Positions 23,708 to 63,966 are shown, counted from the first letter of the stretch. The stretch: DNA of 64,000 nucleotides from IMGVR_UViG_3300043411_000921:124001-188000, one strand, 5' to 3'. The notes: generated by a model not told the origin, from the letters alone. Program-made: numbers and translations.

Positions 23708-25189
23708 TCAGTGGAACATGAGGTAGACACCAGCAACGTGAATATCTTTTGCTGGTCTGTCATTTTCTCCTGGGAGGATGATAACGTTCACTCTGTCATC
23801 ATCACCAAGATCATCTTCGACTTGCTCATATTCTGCCATTGTAAGCATTGGGAAGCTGTTTTTGAATTTGACCTTTGAAGAGTTCAAGATCGCCATTTTG
23901 ACTTCCTCCTCTCTGTTGGGCGCATAGGTCCATGCCGAGTCCCCTTCCACGCCAGATTCTTTTTTGCCCACCTCACTCTTTTTGACGATCGCTCCAGTTT
24001 TCATAAGCAGTGTTTTCACAGACTTTGGAACAATTTGGGAGAACATGTCCTTGGTTGGGTCTATTTGGCGTTCTTCTTCTGGGGTGGCACCAAGGGATTT
24101 GCGAAGCAAGAGGTCTTTGTGTGGCATTTTTGCGGCCAGGGATGGCCGCTTTGTATAAGCGTAAAACTTAACGAAATTTTGGAGAGATGCGGGGAGTTCA
24201 CTCTTTACTCTGTCGATGATGTGGTGGGCGAGTTTAAGATAATCTTCCGAATAGAAATCCCCGGAGTCATGCCAACGAATGACAGTCCTGATTTTTTCTT
24301 GAGCATATTTTTGCACGTTTTGAAGGATCTCGTTCACCAATCTTTCCTGATACATTTCTGGATGGTTGTAAAGCATGTTGAGAGTGATGTTCCTGTTTTC
24401 TGAACTGCCCTTGTATTGCACATACCCGCCTTTCGTGGCATAACAAACCTGCATACAACTTCCGGCACCCGGACAAGTGTTGATAACCTTGAACTTGTTA
24501 TCCCGTTCGTCGTATACAAGACCCATGATGGCCGGGATGCCGATATTGAAAAAGGCTTCAAGCTCTCCGGTAGTGCTCTTTTTCATTTTGTCGTTCTGAT
24601 TTAGAAGAGTAAATTTTGGTTTGTTGTAGTTGGTAACAATGGTTTTTAATACCGAGAGGTCAATTTGTTTTTCATTTTGATCAACAACTGGAACAGCCCC
24701 CGTTTCAGTGTCCCTGTTCCTTCTGTTGAGCGCCGAGGCAGGAACAATGGTGTTTGTTGCTGTTGATGGGTGAAGATACGGAAAAGCATTTGGCAATCCT
24801 CCAGCCACTCCTTTTACAACTTTCCCCTTCTTGTTGATTCTATCTGGCCCCCTCTCAGATCTTTTTCCCAGAACCCCAGCCAAATATGCTGGGTCAACTT
24901 CCGTTCCGCGAATATCACTCCCTGGAGTCAGTGGTTTTTGTGGTGGCTTTGGAAACCTCTTAACATAAGGCGCTTCCGAAAGCAACTTGTCCAGCAGTTT
25001 GGTTTGGACTCTGCGGGCGAACATCTCTTGGATTGTTTCGGATTCACCAGGAACTTCTGGTGGCATGTTTCCTGAATACTTTTGGACAAACTCTTCTGGA
25101 GACATAACCTCGGCATTTGCGAAGATACCAGCACCTGAAACTGCTCCCTCGTTCAAGATCAAATAACGAAGTTTCTTTTTCATTGTCAT
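23708..25189 (-). CDS. Gp88-like (radical-SAM-related) protein with putative head-targeting leader
   Basis: TCPGAGSCMQVCYA, IRWHDSGDF, FYAYTK; leader YLILNE|G. Confidence 0.75.
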   Translation of the reverse strand: MTMKKKLRYLILNEGAVSGAGIFANAEVMSPEEFVQKYSGNMPPEVPGESETIQEMFARRVQTKLLDKLLSEAPYVKRFPKPPQKPLTPGSDIRGTEVDPAYLAGVLGKRSERGPDRINKKGKVVKGVAGGLPNAFPYLHPSTATNTIVPASALNRRNRDTETGAVPVVDQNEKQIDLSVLKTIVTNYNKPKFTLLNQNDKMKKSTTGELEAFFNIGIPAIMGLVYDERDNKFKVINTCPGAGSCMQVCYATKGGYVQYKGSSENRNITLNMLYNHPEMYQERLVNEILQNVQKYAQEKIRTVIRWHDSGDFYSEDYLKLAHHIIDRVKSELPASLQNFVKFYAYTKRPSLAAKMPHKDLLLRKSLGATPEEERQIDPTKDMFSQIVPKSVKTLLMKTGAIVKKSEVGKKESGVEGDSAWTYAPNREEEVKMAILNSSKVKFKNSFPMLTMAEYEQVEDDLGDDDRVNVIILPGENDRPAKDIHVAGVYLMFH

Positions 25190-28871: not shown

Positions 28872-29570
28872 ATGAAACTCTATCAGTTCCTATTTGAAAA
28901 CTCTGTTCCAGAAGTCGAGTTCGATCGTGCTGGAACAGAGTTTGTCCCGCCCACCAAAACCATCAAAGCCTACAAACTCTTTCGTGTGAATCCAGCAAAA
29001 CCTGGAGAACTCTTTCCTCTGTTCGTCAATGCCAACCAATCCTTGAAAATTGGTGTTTGGTATGAAGCAGAAGAAGGAGAAAAAGTTATTGACTCCAAGA
29101 CAGGAAAACCCGGAGTCAAGTCGAAGTTGGGAAGGTTGGCTTATAGACCAGGATGGCACGCAGGGGATTATCCCTTTTCCACACACATTGGAATTGAACC
29201 AAAACCCAGTGAAATTTCTGGGAGGATGGCACCTTCGGCCAGGGCAGACAATCAAGTGTGGGCAGAAGTAGAAATGCCAGCAGATTTTGATTGGCAAGAA
29301 GTTGCTGATAGCAGAGCGGAAAAGATCAAGTCTGGTCCCAAGAAAGGACAGATTAGATCTGATACTGCTCACATCACCGATCAAATCCCCAAAGGCGGAC
29401 ATTATCGGTACAAAACCAATCCCAACATGACAGGAAACTGGATCATTGGTGGTGCAATGAAAATCATTCGTGTTCTCTCCGATGAAGAAGTTGAGAAGAT
29501 CAACTCCTCTGCCGGATACAAAGACCTTCCCAGAAAATCTCCCTTCGATCTAAAACGTTACGGCTTCTGA
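28872..29570 (+). CDS. conserved-looking globular protein with head-targeting leader
   Basis: MKLYQFLFE|N; AYKLFR, LAYRPGWH, VWAEVE; TACCTA 6 nt upstream. Confidence 0.75.
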   Translation: MKLYQFLFENSVPEVEFDRAGTEFVPPTKTIKAYKLFRVNPAKPGELFPLFVNANQSLKIGVWYEAEEGEKVIDSKTGKPGVKSKLGRLAYRPGWHAGDYPFSTHIGIEPKPSEISGRMAPSARADNQVWAEVEMPADFDWQEVADSRAEKIKSGPKKGQIRSDTAHITDQIPKGGHYRYKTNPNMTGNWIIGGAMKIIRVLSDEEVEKINSSAGYKDLPRKSPFDLKRYGF

Positions 29571-42134: not shown

Positions 42135-43322
42135 TTATCTGGCCTGTGCGATTTTTTCTGGGAGGGCTACATTCCAGAGATTTGCCTTGGCTGTCCTTGA
42201 CTTGGTAAACCCCAAAGACTCCAACTTCTTTGCCATTAGCTGAGGCTTATAGTTCGAAACATGAACCAAGCATTTCTCTTCCTTCAAAAACAACATCCTC
42301 GCTTGGATAATCTCCTGAAGGGAAGACTTGGGCTCTTTATCTGTCCAGGGTCGAAGGGAAGAAAAAAACTCCCGGTCCCCATCCTTCAAAGCTCGAACCT
42401 CTTCCAACCCAATCTTCAAATTAGGCTTGTTCTTCTTCAACCAAGAGAAGTAAATCTCATTGACCTTCTCAAAAGATGTATTGAATGCCGGATACTTCGT
42501 TACCGAGTCAATAACTTGTGTAGCTTCATCAAAAAATTCACAATAGTTTTCAAAATGTTTTAGGTAAGCGGAGCAAAGTTTTTCTAGTTGAGCACGTTCT
42601 GCCCCTTTGGCTCTGTCAGAGGAAAGAAGTCTGTGGAGAACAATGTTTCTAACGCCAACTGGGACGGGTTCGGTTTTCATTTTTTCTCTGACATGCTCGA
42701 TTGTTCCAGTTGACCAGTCAGACAGAGAGGACTTAGCCGCCATCTTTGATTTGGTCGTTGTTGTTTTTTGTGTCTTGGTTGATTTCCTTGATTTTAGTGC
42801 GTTGAGGAATTTTTCTGGTAGGTCTTGAATTTCATTCGGACAGACTTCGCCATAAGTGCCACGAGTATGTTTGCTTGGTGGAATAACAACATAACCGTCT
42901 TGGCCTCGTGTATCTACCTTGTCCGCCAAATGGGATGCAGTGTTTTTTGTCGGGGTCGATGTCCAAAACCAAAAATGCCACCCACCAGATCCAGTCCGAT
43001 AGTGAAAAGTCGAAGAAAGTTCCTTTATGATTGGGTGATCTGCCGCATCAACATCAACAACAATAAGATATTTCCCAGTTTTTTCAGATTTTCGTCCTGT
43101 TGCGAGGCCAAAGTTCATTTTGTGACTGAGAGAAAACCACTCTTCAACCTTTTCTGGTTTATTGCTGGCAATGATTTTCCAATTGTAACGAAAGAGTGGG
43201 TGTTTTCCAGGAGAAGCGCAGTTTTGTTCGCCACACGAACAAGTGTTGTTAAGCCGAATCGAATAAAGTGGAAGTATGTGAAATTTGTTTTCCAGAATGA
43301 TTTGTTTAATTGATGATGGCAT
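42135..43322 (-). CDS. bifunctional DNA primase/polymerase (Prim-Pol)
   Basis: CSCG..C.SPGKHP, NFGLATG, VVDVD, TGSGGWH, DTRGQDGYVVIPPS, GVRN. Confidence 0.9.
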   Translation of the reverse strand: MPSSIKQIILENKFHILPLYSIRLNNTCSCGEQNCASPGKHPLFRYNWKIIASNKPEKVEEWFSLSHKMNFGLATGRKSEKTGKYLIVVDVDAADHPIIKELSSTFHYRTGSGGWHFWFWTSTPTKNTASHLADKVDTRGQDGYVVIPPSKHTRGTYGEVCPNEIQDLPEKFLNALKSRKSTKTQKTTTTKSKMAAKSSLSDWSTGTIEHVREKMKTEPVPVGVRNIVLHRLLSSDRAKGAERAQLEKLCSAYLKHFENYCEFFDEATQVIDSVTKYPAFNTSFEKVNEIYFSWLKKNKPNLKIGLEEVRALKDGDREFFSSLRPWTDKEPKSSLQEIIQARMLFLKEEKCLVHVSNYKPQLMAKKLESLGFTKSRTAKANLWNVALPEKIAQAR

Positions 43323-58734: not shown

Positions 58735-59505
58735 TTAGCTCGTTGAGGATGATCCTACGCTACCACCACCAGAAGGAACACCGCCACCATTATCTGGACC
58801 AGAGTTGCCAGCCCTTGGAGCAGCAGGATAATCACCTTCAACCTGCTTCTTCGTCTTGGCTGTAAGATCAAAGTCACGCTCCAAAATATTCACCATCTCT
58901 TTAGCAAGTCTTGGCGAGTAGTTCTTTGAAATGTAAAACATTGCTCGATTTAGAATCAAGGATTTTGGATCAATGAGTGTTTGATAGTTGTTCACAAGCC
59001 TAGCAACGCCTTCAGCAAACTTCCTGATGTTGATTTTTGGAACGGGAACAACTTCTGGGGGATTGCTTTCAGTGTCGTCTCCTCCATCGTCACCGCCACC
59101 AAACGGATCATCTCCACCACCCATGTCCATATCACCAGCATCATCGACAGGTGGTTCTGGTGGAGCTTCTTGCTCAAACAAGAACTTTCCCATCGAGAAC
59201 AAACGTTTTCCTTTTTTCCTTTCGGTCAATGGGGGTGTTTGAATGTTGTCTTTGACTTGTGCAGGATCAACAGGAAGTGCCCCATCCGTTTCCGGCATAT
59301 CCAGAGGGACTGACTCTCTTTCAAACTGCATGAGATACTTGTCAATCTTCTGATCAACAGAAGCTTCTGTCTCTGACAAGGAATCAGAAACACTGGGAAG
59401 CTGAAGAATCTGTTCTGGGCTGGAGACATAGGGCTTTCCATCTCCACCACCCTCTTCCTGTTCTCTCAACAAGAACTCGCTGAAACGTTTCTTTCTCATA
59501 ATCAA
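58735..59505 (-). CDS. acidic putative head core protein
   Basis: FLLRE|Q, LTE|R, FLFE|Q; Asp/Gly-rich linkers. Confidence 0.7.
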   Translation of the reverse strand: MIMRKKRFSEFLLREQEEGGGDGKPYVSSPEQILQLPSVSDSLSETEASVDQKIDKYLMQFERESVPLDMPETDGALPVDPAQVKDNIQTPPLTERKKGKRLFSMGKFLFEQEAPPEPPVDDAGDMDMGGGDDPFGGGDDGGDDTESNPPEVVPVPKINIRKFAEGVARLVNNYQTLIDPKSLILNRAMFYISKNYSPRLAKEMVNILERDFDLTAKTKKQVEGDYPAAPRAGNSGPDNGGGVPSGGGSVGSSSTS

Positions 59506-60317
59506 AGGATCCTTCCACCAAGAACTTCAACTGGAGGAGATGATTGTGGCAATCCAACGCTCGTCTCCTTCTCATTTGAAACAACAGCTTGGACAGAGTA
59601 AAGCTGGTGGAGCTTCGCCATCTCAGCAATCAACATTCTCATTTCAACAACATTCCAATTGATTTCTCGCATGGAGCGATTGAGATATTCAAGCTTCTCT
59701 CCTGGGAAATCAAGGAACCAAGCGTGGTGCCATGTGTCAAGAACCAGCACTGGAATTGCCATCAATGGAAGATGAAGGGTATGACCTTCAACAAAAGTGT
59801 TGAAATAACGTTGTTTGAACGGATCGAAGTAACAAACAGCCCAACCTTCTCTGGACGCCATTCCGCAAGCTCTGAAATCCAATTGCCACTGGTCGAAGGT
59901 TCCCCAATCCCTTGAAAGACGCATAAAAGGAATGCTGTCAGCACGAATCTCGGAGTTCAAATCTCCCGTGTTGGTGAACAACAACTCGTGGAACTTCACT
60001 CCGTTCATGTTGTGAGTCTCATCAATCTTCAACCTTCTGAACTCTGAATCGTTTGGGTTATCTGCATCTGTCTTTGGAACAGAATCCAGCTTCGCAGAAA
60101 TTTTGTTGTGACTTGTGACGTAGCTGTTATACAGCTTTTCGTGGTTTTCCTTTGTTGTGGGGGATGAAACATCGCCCTTCAAAATAAATGAACGAGGCAT
60201 CAACACAGCCGCTTCTGAAACAACAGCTTTTGCCGCTTGTGCTACCTTTCCATCCAAAACTGTTCCAACAGCTTCTCGAATGATCTTCTGGAGATCTTTT
60301 GCATTGAGGGTCGTCAT
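59502..60317 (-). CDS. Fe/Mn superoxide dismutase-like protein with head-targeting leader
   Basis: NHEKLY, FHELLF, GWA, PVLVLDTWHHAW, INW; leader DLQKIIRE|A. Confidence 0.85.
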   Translation of the reverse strand: MTTLNAKDLQKIIREAVGTVLDGKVAQAAKAVVSEAAVLMPRSFILKGDVSSPTTKENHEKLYNSYVTSHNKISAKLDSVPKTDADNPNDSEFRRLKIDETHNMNGVKFHELLFTNTGDLNSEIRADSIPFMRLSRDWGTFDQWQLDFRACGMASREGWAVCYFDPFKQRYFNTFVEGHTLHLPLMAIPVLVLDTWHHAWFLDFPGEKLEYLNRSMREINWNVVEMRMLIAEMAKLHQLYSVQAVVSNEKETSVGLPQSSPPVEVLGGRIL

Positions 60318-60323
60318 GTGTTC

Positions 60324-61352
60324 TTACTTCTTCTTCCTTGATCTTACAGTCTCTGTAAATAGACCAGAAAGGGGTGCATGAGCATCATCATCCAATCCAA
60401 GCCTGTCTGCAATGTTCAGCATTCCTCTATCTTCCGCAGCATCCCCAGCCCTTGAAACTCTTGTGTCTCCGAGGGAAGGGAACACCCCCTGATAACTCGG
60501 ACCCGACTCCCCAAGAGGGAACAGGATTTCTCTTATTGATTCCCCTTTGGATCCCTCTTCTGGTAATGTTCCACTAGACAACATCCCTGACAACTTTCTC
60601 ATCGGGTTTTCTCGTGTGTTCTCCAAGAAGACGTAAGCGAGGGCATCACACGTCACGGATCCTTTTGCGAGCACCTCTTGTTGATATTCGTAGGTGTCCT
60701 CCCCGACCTCCAGGTACTTCGCAGCCTCAAACATGTTGAAAAAGAAGCTGTTTTCCTCGGTCTTGCACCTTCCAAGGACAACAAATCCCTTGGGAATATC
60801 ACCTTCCATGCGAACCTGACCAAAAAGCTTGGGCATGGACTCTTCCCTCCTGGACCAACTGGTGATATTATTCCCGGCTCTAGGTGACATAATAGCGCCA
60901 CGAACGACTCCTTCCTTACCAGGAGTCGTCAAGCCTGTTAGACGCCTCAGATAATCCTCCTGGATGCCAAAGAGAACCCTCCAGGCATATCCCTCTCTCA
61001 CCTGAAAGAATTTCTTGTACCAACCCTGCTCCTTCATCTTCCACATCAGGTCAACCATTTTTTCCAGGCCATCCCTGTTGTTCCATGAATAGTAGTTGCC
61101 AAGAGCAGCAATCAACCTCTTTTCTTCGGGAGAATCCTCTTCCTGAATATTTTCCTCGTAAACGTTCTTCCTCATCCACCCAAAAAGATATTCCCCAAAA
61201 GGTGCGTCTTTCGGAGCTTCTGGTGGAGGAGAATCCTTCACAACAGCAACCTTCTTTTTTGGTTTGGGTGGCAGCCAAGGCTTGTCTGGATCAAACTCCC
61301 AATCATCCCATCCGTCACTTTCCCATAAAAACCTTGAAATTCTAGGCGTCAT
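60324..61352 (-). CDS. putative ADP-ribosyltransferase-like protein with head-targeting leader
   Basis: AWR...TSWS...YQQEVL in R-S-E order; leader SRFLWE|S. Confidence 0.55.
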   Translation of the reverse strand: MTPRISRFLWESDGWDDWEFDPDKPWLPPKPKKKVAVVKDSPPPEAPKDAPFGEYLFGWMRKNVYEENIQEEDSPEEKRLIAALGNYYSWNNRDGLEKMVDLMWKMKEQGWYKKFFQVREGYAWRVLFGIQEDYLRRLTGLTTPGKEGVVRGAIMSPRAGNNITSWSRREESMPKLFGQVRMEGDIPKGFVVLGRCKTEENSFFFNMFEAAKYLEVGEDTYEYQQEVLAKGSVTCDALAYVFLENTRENPMRKLSGMLSSGTLPEEGSKGESIREILFPLGESGPSYQGVFPSLGDTRVSRAGDAAEDRGMLNIADRLGLDDDAHAPLSGLFTETVRSRKKK

Positions 61353-61397
61353 CGAAATAACTAGAATCCCTCAAATACCCACGCCACACTCGTTCCC

Positions 61398-62567
61398 ATG
61401 AAGTTGAAATACCAAAATCAGACAGTAGACATCGTTCTAGGAATGGCCTTCGGTGATGAAGGAAAGGGAAAAGTGGTTGACTATCTTGCTGAGAATTATG
61501 ACTATGTTGTTCGGTTCAATGGAGGGAACAACGCTGGGCACAGTTTGAAGGTTGGCAACTTCAAGACTTCCGTTCATGCACTTCCTTCCGGGGTTTTGCA
61601 TCCACACGTTTTCAACGTGATTGGGAACGGCTGTGTTGTGAACCCAAACCAATTGGCAGATGAGATTCAAAAGATTGGGGCTGGGAGTTTGCAAGGGAGA
61701 GTTTTTGTTTCAGATGCTGCTCATGTGATCACACCTCAGAATATTGAGGAAGATTGCAAAGGTGGAAGCAAAGAGAGGATTGGAACAACGGGAAGAGGGA
61801 TTGGTCCGACTTATGCAGCAAAGATGAATAGAACGGGACTGAGAATGGGAGACCTTCTCAAAGGGGAAGGGAGAGAACTCTTTTCCCAAGATGTTCTGGA
61901 TGTTGTTCTTCCTTTGATCACAAACACCACGAAGCTGCTAAGAACAGCTTGTGATTCTGATGCGAGGATTTTGTTGGAAGGAGCACAAGGTTGTGCTTTG
62001 GATATTGACCACGGGACTTATCCATACGTCACCAGCAGCAATTGTTCCGTTGCTGGAGCACTTTCTGGCACTGGGCTTTCTCACAAAAACATTCGACGTG
62101 TGATTGGAGTTACCAAAGCTTATTCAACAAGAGTTGGAGAAGGTCCATTCCTTTCTGAAATTTTTGGGGAAGAAGCAGAAAGACTTCGTGCTGCTGGAAA
62201 TGAGTACGGAACAACCACTGGAAGACCTCGTAGAGTTGGTTGGTTGGATGCCAAACAACTTCGTGAAGCTTGTCAAATGAATGGTGTTGATCAACTCGTT
62301 GTAACCAAACTTGATGTGCTTTCAGGATTGCCTTATGTTGAAATTGATCACGGTGGGCCAAAGGAAACGAAATCGGGGGCACTCGTTTTCAAAATGAAAA
62401 ACCCACAATATTCTAGCTGGGTTTCTATCCCTGAAACCACAACGAAATACTCTGACCTTCCCAAAGAAGCACAGAACTTTGTTGATATCATTGAAAGTGC
62501 AGCATCAGTTCCAGTAACACACGTCTCCATCTCTCCAGATAGATCTGGAACTCTTCCCAGACCATGA
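61398..62567 (+). CDS. purA: adenylosuccinate synthetase
   Basis: GDEGKGK, GGNNAGH, IGTTGRGIGP, EGAQG, YPYVTSS, GTTTGRPRRVGW, TKLD. Confidence 0.97.
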   Translation: MKLKYQNQTVDIVLGMAFGDEGKGKVVDYLAENYDYVVRFNGGNNAGHSLKVGNFKTSVHALPSGVLHPHVFNVIGNGCVVNPNQLADEIQKIGAGSLQGRVFVSDAAHVITPQNIEEDCKGGSKERIGTTGRGIGPTYAAKMNRTGLRMGDLLKGEGRELFSQDVLDVVLPLITNTTKLLRTACDSDARILLEGAQGCALDIDHGTYPYVTSSNCSVAGALSGTGLSHKNIRRVIGVTKAYSTRVGEGPFLSEIFGEEAERLRAAGNEYGTTTGRPRRVGWLDAKQLREACQMNGVDQLVVTKLDVLSGLPYVEIDHGGPKETKSGALVFKMKNPQYSSWVSIPETTTKYSDLPKEAQNFVDIIESAASVPVTHVSISPDRSGTLPRP

Positions 62568-62941
62568 CAACAACTGAAGATTGGTCATTCAAACCAGGAG
62601 ACATTTTCATTATCCCCGCTTCGCATTCATCTGATTGGCAGAATCTATACGACAACATTGGTCGGTACTCTGGCAGCAAATACTTGCAGTTGACCTATCC
62701 TGCTGAGACTCGTCAACAGCCAATCCTTTCCGAAATTGAGATTGATGAACTTTGTTTCTTCTTCAACACCAGAACCCTTGGTCCGAATGGGAAAATCGTC
62801 TTTCTAGGCTTCTCACAGAAAAACCCAGAGACAATGGGTTTGTTCATCAACTCAGAAGGAGCAGTGATTGAAATTGAATTGCTGTTTTTCGAGGAAGATG
62901 TTGTTGGATATCTCCAGAAAATAGAAGTGGAAAGTGATTAA
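62564..62941 (+). CDS. hypothetical protein (FLGF..NSEG family)
   Basis: FKPGDIF; KIVFLGFS..GLFINSEG. Confidence 0.7.
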   Translation: MTTTEDWSFKPGDIFIIPASHSSDWQNLYDNIGRYSGSKYLQLTYPAETRQQPILSEIEIDELCFFFNTRTLGPNGKIVFLGFSQKNPETMGLFINSEGAVIEIELLFFEEDVVGYLQKIEVESD

Positions 62942-63275
62942 GCCCGGAGATGTTTTCGTTGAGATCATCGGCAAACGCATACGAAAGTCGCAAAGAAAAC
63001 TGAGAGTTTCTTGGTCTGTCGAAATGAGAGACGATATGAGGGCATTCTATAACGTCATCGGACCAGTGATTCCCATTAATTTCCTTCACCCAGAAGGTTG
63101 TGAAAACAACAAAGTCGTTTTCTTGGGATTTAGTAAAACCAGACCCAAGACAACTGGCATGTTCATCAACTCTGAAGGTTCAATTGAGGAAATTGACTTA
63201 GAGTTCTTTGTTGAAGAGATCGTTGGCAAATTCATAACAAAGCTGGAAACAGAGGATAATGAAGATGTTGAATGA
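62934..63275 (+). CDS. hypothetical protein (FLGF..NSEG family)
   Basis: IKPGDVF; KVVFLGFS..GMFINSEG. Confidence 0.7.
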   Translation: MIKPGDVFVEIIGKRIRKSQRKLRVSWSVEMRDDMRAFYNVIGPVIPINFLHPEGCENNKVVFLGFSKTRPKTTGMFINSEGSIEEIDLEFFVEEIVGKFITKLETEDNEDVE

Positions 63276-63630: not shown

Positions 63631-63966
63631 ATGGAAAACGAATACAATCTCACCCCTGGAAAAGTCTTTTCAGTCGAACCAAACATTTCAAAAAATCTAT
63701 TCAAAGCCTTTCATAAACCGGGAACGATGTCATGTGCCATCATGGCACATGCTCAATTGTCGCCACCTGGATTTGCTGAGAATCTTGTGAAAACTGGGAA
63801 GCTGTTGGGTGGAGCTGATGCGATTACCTTCCTTGGTTTTGTGGATGATTCATTCGAGAAAGGTTTGTTTGAAAATTCTCGTGGAGAAAGGGCAGAAGTT
63901 TTCTTGGGACCAGAGATTGACCCACACCTCGAACTTGTTTTAACGGACAAGGCAGAAACTCCTTGA
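63631..63966 (+). CDS. hypothetical protein (FLGF..NSRG family)
   Basis: LTPGKVF; ITFLGF..GLFENSRG. Confidence 0.7.
   Translation: MENEYNLTPGKVFSVEPNISKNLFKAFHKPGTMSCAIMAHAQLSPPGFAENLVKTGKLLGGADAITFLGFVDDSFEKGLFENSRGERAEVFLGPEIDPHLELVLTDKAETP

Follow-up and report, generated by a model that had tools for sequence, protein, structure and literature searches.

Does a large, uncultured phage with a T4-type head send an ADP-ribosyltransferase (ART) into its host together with its DNA? This question is raised by an open reading frame (ORF) at positions 60324-61352, minus strand, of IMGVR_UViG_3300043411_000921:124001-188000. This stretch of 64,000 nucleotides, i.e., the window, corresponds to positions 124001-188000 of one 241,399-bp viral contig (G000). 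The ORF product, hereafter the target, had been described in the first-pass annotation as an unannotated ART-like protein of the Arg-Ser-Glu (R-S-E) type and as a possible injected analogue of T4 Alt. In the present analysis, the target was predicted as an ART-fold enzyme using nicotinamide adenine dinucleotide (NAD+), which is very likely. With less confidence, it is probably a capsid-targeted, protease-processed, and ejected mono-ART of the R-S-E clade, i.e., a functional analogue of Alt.

R-S-E motifs and predicted fold of the target

The ORF and its parts were located as follows. The predicted local distance difference test (pLDDT) values are those of the structural model.

60324..61352, minus strand: complete ORF of 342 aa plus stop with ATG start, predicted ADP-ribosyltransferase (ORF listing, translation, third-position bias)
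61320..61352, minus strand: residues 1-11, MTPRISRFLWE|S, putative capsid-targeting propeptide with an L-x-E end (L9 invariant in alignment A2, family leaders, leader matrix)
61224..61319, minus strand: residues 12-43, linker rich in Trp and Asp, then in Pro and Lys (GWDDWEFDPDKPWLPP...; alignment A2, pLDDT 55-76)
60573..61223, minus strand: residues 44-260, conserved domain with an N-terminal helical part and an ART-like beta core (alignments, model)
60978..60980, minus strand: codon of R125, the Arg of Y-A-W-R, within strand 122-130 (121/121 rows, DSSP of the model)
60852..60860, minus strand: S165-W166-S167 (S-x-S/T), terminating strand 163-167, with helix 170-182 coming next (alignment, model)
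60675..60683, minus strand: Q224-Q225-E226 ([QE]-x-E), where E226 opens strand 226-230 after loop 212-225 (alignment, model)
60327..60572, minus strand: residues 261-342, C-terminal tail, predicted disordered (pLDDT <50)

The motifs that had suggested an ART were found in the translation at the claimed sites, i.e., YAWR at residue 122 (R125), ITSWS at 163 (S165 and S167), and YQQEVL at 223 (Q224, Q225, and E226). In the target sequence alone, the triad is weak evidence. The loose pattern [aromatic]R..SxS..[QE]xE with ART-like spacing appeared in 15% of composition-preserving shuffles of the target, and a stricter version in 0.4%. Across the relatives, the triad as a sequence pattern is far beyond chance.

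The relatives were collected by an exhaustive HMMER search of 1.84 billion representatives, in which 117 representatives sharing query residues ~40-250 were found at E <= 1e-3. Word-seeded protein searches recognized only the target's own cluster with the single sequence, and the profile version added P0070. Most family members have 210-260 aa, and in some of them the domain is fused to other, unrecognised regions. Conservation was counted on 125 aligned domains from the 117 representatives, and alignment A1 was made of 105 sequences. The three motifs were the most conserved columns among the aligned domains. R125 was kept in all 121 rows having a residue and was preceded by Y, W, or F in 118 of them. 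Position 165 was S (93) or G (24), W166 was W in 118, and position 167 was T or S in 115, so that a near-invariant Trp stands in the middle of the S-x-S/T motif across the family. Position 224 was E (80) or Q (37), and E226 was E in 116 of 117. The additional members that were examined all keep R, S-W-T, and [EQ]-x-E. The subclade of the target is uniformly Q-x-E, and more distant members are E-x-E. In the N-terminal helical part of the domain, which begins with PEAP.DAPFG.YLF, residues R61, E71, E77, and Y112 were nearly invariant. The linker (residues 12-43) is common only to the closest relatives (P0002, P0005, P0009, and L022). The C-terminal tail (residues 261-342) is not conserved in the family; it is unique to the target's own cluster and matches three short proteins only.

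The target is a real gene under purifying selection, because the differences in a ~92%-identical variant from a sludge RNA library sit mainly on third codon positions (23 of the 28 listed differences, p = 1.5e-7). The same sequence is recurrent in freshwater, wastewater, and estuary metagenomes of at least five independent studies. Chance motifs in a non-coding region or a spurious ORF would be favoured by the frequency of the loose pattern in the shuffles. This explanation has a negligible probability, and it is refuted by the 117 homologous representatives, the conservation of the motifs, and the third-position bias, with the recurrence among the studies and the confident structural model also speaking against it.

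The AlphaFold2 model computed on A1 showed pLDDT >90 over residues 40-260 and a predicted template modelling score of 0.71, and the single-sequence model was uninformative (pLDDT 35). In the model, R125 lies in the first core strand (122-130), S-W-S ends strand 163-167 ahead of helix 170-182, and E226 is placed at the loop/strand junction. Such strand placement of R, S-x-S, and Q-x-E is canonical for R-S-E ARTs. Foldseek searching against PDB gave weak scores (best E 1.3e-2), with a list headed by TreX, cholera A1, PltA, pertussis S1, and ScARP. The top Swiss-Prot model match in the structure search was DRAT. A VIA-align scan of 48,161 PDB cluster representatives, which is independent of Foldseek, returned almost only members of the ART superfamily among the top 50. 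The best matches were PltA (Z 5.7), Vis (Z 5.5-5.7, covering residues 45-282), and pertussis S1 (Z 5.0-5.3). TreX, Scabin, Tre1, CARDS, iota/C2/VIP2, ExoS/T, C3, Certhrax, HopU1, pierisin, SpvB, and ART2.2 were also matched, together with DarT, Tpt1/KptA, Arr, ParT, and RES. The alignments to Vis, Tre1, XopAI, iota, and C3 run from residue ~45-55 to ~258. Feature and shape searches of the ESM Atlas led to DRAT, ADPrib_exo_Tox, Mod_ADP_RT, Lart1, and unnamed viral clusters. The Foldseek comparison of an AlphaFold model, which the first-pass annotation had proposed as a check, was thereby carried out, and the predicted fold was ART-like. The ART-like reading was borne out by the confident model, by structural matches almost exclusively to the ART superfamily, and by motifs on the canonical elements. 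Going by the aligned ranges, R125 would pair with pertussis R9 and cholera R7, and the pertussis partner of E226 would be E129; this is offset arithmetic and not a residue-level alignment.

Inactive ART-like folds, e.g., anthrax lethal factor domain II and AvrPphF ORF2, were present among the matches, and the structural Z-scores are modest. Both points would suit a head protein, structural or internal, that is without catalytic activity and has a residual ART-like fold. Against this stand R125 and E226, which are near-invariant, and S-W-T, which is conserved, across relatives at 20-45% identity. This indicates an active-site signature and not a scaffold, and an inert protein is therefore very improbable.

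A second alternative concerns what the enzyme would modify. The target might have the ART fold but leave proteins unmodified, acting as an NADase or NAD+ phosphorylase, or ADP-ribosylating nucleic acids or small molecules in the manner of pierisin/ScARP/Scabin, DarT, Tpt1, or Arr. Scabin, ScARP, DarT, Tpt1/KptA, Arr, and RES/MbcT were indeed among the structural matches (Z 3-5), and the fused member P0086 has a weak Tpt1/KptA match upstream of the domain. The Q-x-E motif also occurs in the guanine-specific Scabin/ScARP/pierisin group. However, the best-covering matches modify proteins (PltA, Vis, pertussis S1, Tre1, and the C3/iota/ExoS group), and two thirds of the family are E-x-E, which is typical of arginine-specific enzymes. 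Moreover, DarT, Tpt1, and RES are without the full R-S-E triad in the published classification (PMC9503650). An enzyme without protein targets is considered improbable on this balance.

Whichever macromolecule is modified, the acceptor is probably not arginine, because the motif of the target is Q-x-E and not E-x-E; this is reasoned by analogy from the behaviour of other ART families only. Q-x-E ARTs have Asn or guanine as the acceptor.

The claim that the protein is unannotated was borne out. Neither the target nor its 105 aligned relatives matched any Pfam (E <= 0.1 for relatives) or PHROG family, and megablast and tblastn searches of 50,697 GenBank phage records gave no match to the contig or the target. 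Searching PDB sequences by phmmer and profiles gave nothing meaningful. PF03496 was not matched in the genome at E <= 1, and PF07357 (DRAT) was not matched at E <= 10 in the genome and was absent from the Pfam search of the 105 members, so the link to DRAT is a structural resemblance only. In hhalign, A1 reached probabilities of 0.5% and 0.1% in the comparisons with T4 Alt and its ART domain, and 0.7% against each of ModA and ModB. As a positive control, T4 Alt itself matched PF03496 at 5.8e-36 (residues 374-614); therefore, these negatives are meaningful. The phage families recognised in the R-S-E clade are T4Alt/VIP2 and Mod (PMC9503650). The fold and the active-site pattern make the target an ART, and its sequence places it in a distinct family, because no Pfam, PHROG, or PDB-sequence match was obtained and the hhalign probabilities were 0.1-0.7%. 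It is not a member of Alt/VIP2, Mod, or DRAT. Of the proposed relation to T4 Alt, the analogue was retained, whereas homology was not (hhalign probability <1% against Alt, ModA, and ModB).

Leader, TAGTTA element, and proposed head packaging

The N-terminus of the target carries the FLWE|S leader that had been pointed out before, with FLWES starting at residue 8 (residues 8-12) in the translation. In 72 members, an amphipathic leader ending in [LIVMFWY]-x-E was found directly before the PEAP.DAPFG.YLF domain start, e.g., MISLQQLLFE|E, MSKLLLKEYVRLILE|Q, and MKTLKEFYEFLLHE|A. In the alignment of the closest relatives (A2), a short N-terminal segment is conserved and L9 is invariant. In the target leader, the hydrophobic residues I5, F8, and L9 are placed at P7, P4, and P3, and E11 at P1. 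A signal peptide was rejected as the identity of the leader by inspection, as the segment is amphipathic and charged with no hydrophobic stretch.

A position matrix was made from 70 family leaders, the target being excluded. Its strongest preferences were at P7, P4, P3, and P1, which equal residues 4, 7, 8, and 10 of the T4 internal protein IPIII. In the capsid targeting sequence of IPIII, residues 4 and 7 are reported to govern targeting and residues 8 and 10 processing, and the first 10 residues suffice for targeting (PMC9026906). T4 proteins taken from AF158101 were scored with this matrix. IPII and IPIII peaked at residue 10 (MKTYQEFIAE|A, 9.9), gp22 at residue 9 (8.5), and gp24 at residue 10 (6.4), and the start of T4 Alt, MELITELFDE|D, scored 4.2. 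Leader-like matches were ~4-fold enriched at positions 8-25 of the G000 ORFs (p = 5e-5). Among them are small proteins encoded next to the capsid gene, as well as the gene directly downstream of the target.

A second L-x-E site was observed in the C-terminal tail, ILFPLGE282|S, with a leader-matrix score of 7.4 at E282. C-terminal trimming has also been reported for T4 Alt (PMC9026906).

Directly upstream of the gene, a promoter-like hexamer is placed as the first-pass annotation had stated.

61358..61363, minus strand: TAGTTA, promoter-like, 5 nt upstream of the target ATG (genome-wide distribution)

The coding strand reads ...GGGATTC TAGTTA TTTCG ATG at this point. TAGTTA is rare in the genome, with 27 sites against ~118 expected. 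Seventeen of the 27 sites (63%) have the start of a same-strand gene no more than 50 nt downstream, compared with 3.8% for 59 letter permutations (p = 3.5e-18). Further G000 sites include 207156, 199706, 193368, 212204, 203317, 171129, and 128018. The sites close to gene starts are mostly before virion structural genes. The element stands before the genes of the major head protein, the tail sheath, the tail tube, an adaptor-like gene, and the target, and also before the first gene of the prohead-protease operon and two very large ORFs of the window. A Shine-Dalgarno reading was rejected, as the spacing from the start ranges between 5 and 45 nt and the element precedes operon-first genes. TAGTTA is read here as the virion-gene (late-type) promoter element of this phage, in which case the ART gene would belong to the same regulon as the particle proteins. 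In four genes, no more than 5-6 nt separate the element from the start codon, so that their 5' leaders would be very short or absent. In the nearest relative, P0002 (L012/L013), TAGCTA stands upstream instead of TAGTTA, and the locus context of P0002 was uninformative.

The machinery that packaging would need was searched in the source genome. The phage is uncultured and known from metagenomes only. IMG/VR and CheckV put the completeness of G000 at ~66%, so that the whole genome would measure about 365 kb. T4-type morphogenesis genes were identified, i.e., a Gp23-type major head protein (PF07068, E 3e-63; phrog_138, E 7e-71), a Peptidase_S77 or gp21-type prohead protease (PF03420, E 1.1e-26; G000 210667-211287), and portal, tail sheath, and tail tube genes. 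DnaB, RNR, PhoH, Prim-Pol, and PurA-like genes were also found on the contig.

The relatives give a further context. Four IMG/VR contigs carry a family member, and the search for related loci used A2. In the two large contigs, G002 and G003 (137 and 113 kb), a gp21-type protease gene and a gp23-type capsid gene are both present, and the two small fragments (15-24% complete) are without these genes and uninformative. In L017, an 82.6-kb contig of another T4-like phage, three tandem paralogues are located with the gp13 neck gene on one side and the sheath genes on the other (L017:8489-10762). Each of them has its own leader, and they were recognized by the family hidden Markov model (HMM) with E 1e-53 to 1e-62. 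In L018, two tandem copies were found (L018:2-1248). These arrays lie within virion structural modules.

The proposal of an injected Alt analogue was borne out as far as inference goes, by a leader like the T4 propeptides, the gp21-type protease, the upstream motif, and relatives in structural modules. It is fairly probable that the target is packaged and ejected. Head-packaged ARTs are common in myoviruses (PMC9503650). Alternatively, the target could be an active ART that stays unpackaged and acts in the producing cell like T4 ModA and ModB, its N-terminal segment being an ordinary helix. Such an enzyme would agree with the weak score of the target leader on the family matrix (3.7) and with the position of the gene, which is ~20 kb from the head module and adjoins the metabolic gene purA. 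The position of the leader, however, is conserved, with L9 invariant in the subclade and leaders in most of the family. In addition, TAGTTA is common to the virion genes, relatives occur in structural modules, and a gp21-type protease is present. An unpackaged enzyme is therefore unlikely, though it is the least improbable of the alternatives considered here.

Several observations weigh against an ejected ART, and they concern the packaging as well as the enzyme. The target leader PRISRFLWE scores 3.7, whereas the training median is 12.1. The late-promoter role of TAGTTA was read solely from which genes follow it, and the contigs from RNA libraries count as presence and not as transcription. 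A second, shorter family member is encoded in G000 outside the window (L016:2081-2662, plus strand, i.e., G000 62080-62661; 194 aa, HMM E 2e-17). It has the motifs RVYRGM, IQSWTT, and EHEREVV (E-x-E), starts with MKLSEILFPN..., and has an ATG that overlaps with the stop codon of the ORF before it. Its leader MKLSEILFP is without the terminal Glu and no TAGTTA is nearby, so not every member need be processed alike. No sequence-level link to any curated ART family was obtained in Pfam, PHROG, PDB sequences, or hhalign. The best Foldseek E is ~1e-2, and the best VIA-align Z of 5.7 is below the best-match background of 7-8, where a Z <8 can mean merely a common arrangement according to the tool note. 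Thus, the structural argument rests on the purity of the match list and the coverage of the whole domain, and not on the height of the score.

The analysis established the gene, its motif conservation, its predicted fold, the presence of the prohead protease, the distribution of TAGTTA, and the genomic contexts. With the packaged ART as the preferred reading, we infer enzymatic activity, late timing, packaging, cleavage, and ejection, which could be arranged as follows. The gene would be expressed with the virion genes from the TAGTTA promoter-like element. The 11-residue propeptide MTPRISRFLWE would carry the protein into the prohead scaffolding core, where the gp21-type prohead protease would cut it off after Glu11. 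On ejection, the mature enzyme would enter the next host cell along with the DNA and, at the very start of infection, would move ADP-ribose from NAD+ to a host macromolecule. In this enzyme, NAD+ would be bound through R125 and S165-W-S167, and the Q-x-E motif would supply the catalytic glutamate, E226.

Neighbouring genes and other leader-bearing proteins

Two genes follow the target on the same strand.

59502..60317, minus strand: Fe/Mn-superoxide dismutase (SOD)-like protein, 6 nt after the target stop (Sod_Fe_C, E 1e-14)
58735..59505, minus strand: acidic Gly/Asp-rich 256-aa protein starting ...RFSEFLLRE|Q, with a 4-nt overlap with the SOD-like gene

The SOD-like protein keeps D194-x-W-x-H198 and H110, with some doubt about the first N-domain His. 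Among the leader matches of the genome, that of this protein, MTTLNAKDLQKIIRE|A, ranks second. The gene is probably co-transcribed with the target, and its product may be a packaged enzyme. The acidic protein is the product of the third consecutive leader-bearing gene and has no family match.

A bolder proposal joins these genes with the motif of the target. The Q-x-E subclade (target, P0002-P0009, and L021-L024) might be capsid-delivered non-arginine ARTs, acting on guanine in host DNA or RNA or on protein Asn/Gln, and the ART, SOD-like, and acidic genes might form a cassette of ejected enzymes. This combination is speculative and has a low probability. If true, these would be the first phage-injected enzymes of non-arginine (guanine or Asn/Gln) specificity, and an injected SOD-like protein would be included.

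On the other side of the target, an adenylosuccinate-synthetase gene was found at 61398-62567, plus strand (PF00709, E 2e-127). It runs divergently from the ART gene at a distance of 45 bp. The best PHROG match bears the name of the 2-amino-adenine (PurZ-type) enzyme, but the canonical GDEGKGK loop is kept; the product may be either PurA or PurZ. Downstream of this purA-like gene, three small tandem paralogues of 111-125 aa were located at 62564-62941, 62934-63275, and 63631-63966, plus strand. They share a core, ...FLGF...G[LM]F.NS.G..., and have no family match.

Leader-like N-termini were also observed in other proteins of the window. These are a Prim-Pol protein (MPSSIKQIILE|N, 42135-43322, minus strand), a GP88-family protein (MTMKKKLRYLILNE|G, 23708-25189, minus strand), and a 232-aa protein (MKLYQFLFE|N, 28872-29570, plus strand). 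The 232-aa ORF was rejected as a family member by the HMM despite its family-like leader. It is possible that the three proteins are further head cargo, or that they are false positives of the matrix.

Beside the family arrays, a conserved neighbour of ~220 aa (MARLFITAREQQF... / MPRLFVTQREIDF...) was observed in both L017 and L018. Among the near-identical relatives, a histone-deacetylase-family gene (PF00850, 289 aa) was found at L001:1181-2050, near a gp19-like tail tube gene.

Significance and comparison with known systems

The analysis gives a functional prediction for at least 117 sequence clusters of uncultured phages, a family that had been outside Pfam and PHROGs. Where contigs could be examined, the members belong to large T4-like phages found in freshwater and wastewater. 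For these distant phages, with genomes estimated at ~300-370 kb, the T4 rule of a short capsid-targeting tag with variable cargo would be extended, and the leader matrix flags candidate ejected proteins in such genomes. The split between E-x-E and Q-x-E within one family and one genome is a natural comparison for divergence of ART acceptor specificity, and TAGTTA is a candidate marker of the virion-gene regulon. That myoviruses package ARTs is, as a general idea, already in the literature (PMC9503650); the finding thus enlarges a known theme and overturns nothing.

Of the bacterial enzymes, the cholera/pertussis/PltA and C3/Vis/ExoS groups, together with DRAT, were the best structural matches, and they show the same order and strand placement of the motifs. 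The differences are an identity of 8-15%, no HMM match, and no B-subunit or secretion context, and the target is a phage gene.

T4 ModA and ModB resemble the target as compact single-domain phage ARTs of ~200 aa. However, the mod genes of T4 sit among early-region genes (dda, srd, and mrh), whereas the target family has a leader of the capsid-targeting type. ModA and ModB are not on the list of T4 head proteins (PMC9026906).

The internal proteins IPI-III of T4 have a short N-terminal propeptide ending in L/I-x-E and diverse cargo behind a conserved tag (PMC3012670), and the relatives of the target form tandem, variable gene arrays like the T4 cargo genes. The T4 proteins are small and basic and none is an ART, whereas the cargo of the target is an enzyme domain. 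IPI is an inhibitor of a restriction enzyme (PMC3012670).

T4 Alt is different in sequence, with no detectable homology and no PF03496 match in the target family, and in layout. Alt has 682 aa with the ART domain at 374-614 in the C-terminal half, whereas the target has a compact 217-residue domain behind a leader and a short linker. The target also differs by Q-x-E with S-W-S, the near-invariant Trp, its Q-x-E subclade, and the tandem arrays of its relatives. Alt and the target are alike in being R-S-E-type ARTs of phages with T4-type heads and in having an N-terminal leader of the same form (MELITELFDE in Alt). Each T4 head contains ~40 copies of Alt, which are trimmed by gp21 at the N- and C-terminus and, once ejected, modify the host RNA polymerase (PMC9026906). 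The same logic, i.e., packaging, cutting by a gp21-type protease, and ejection, is proposed for the target.

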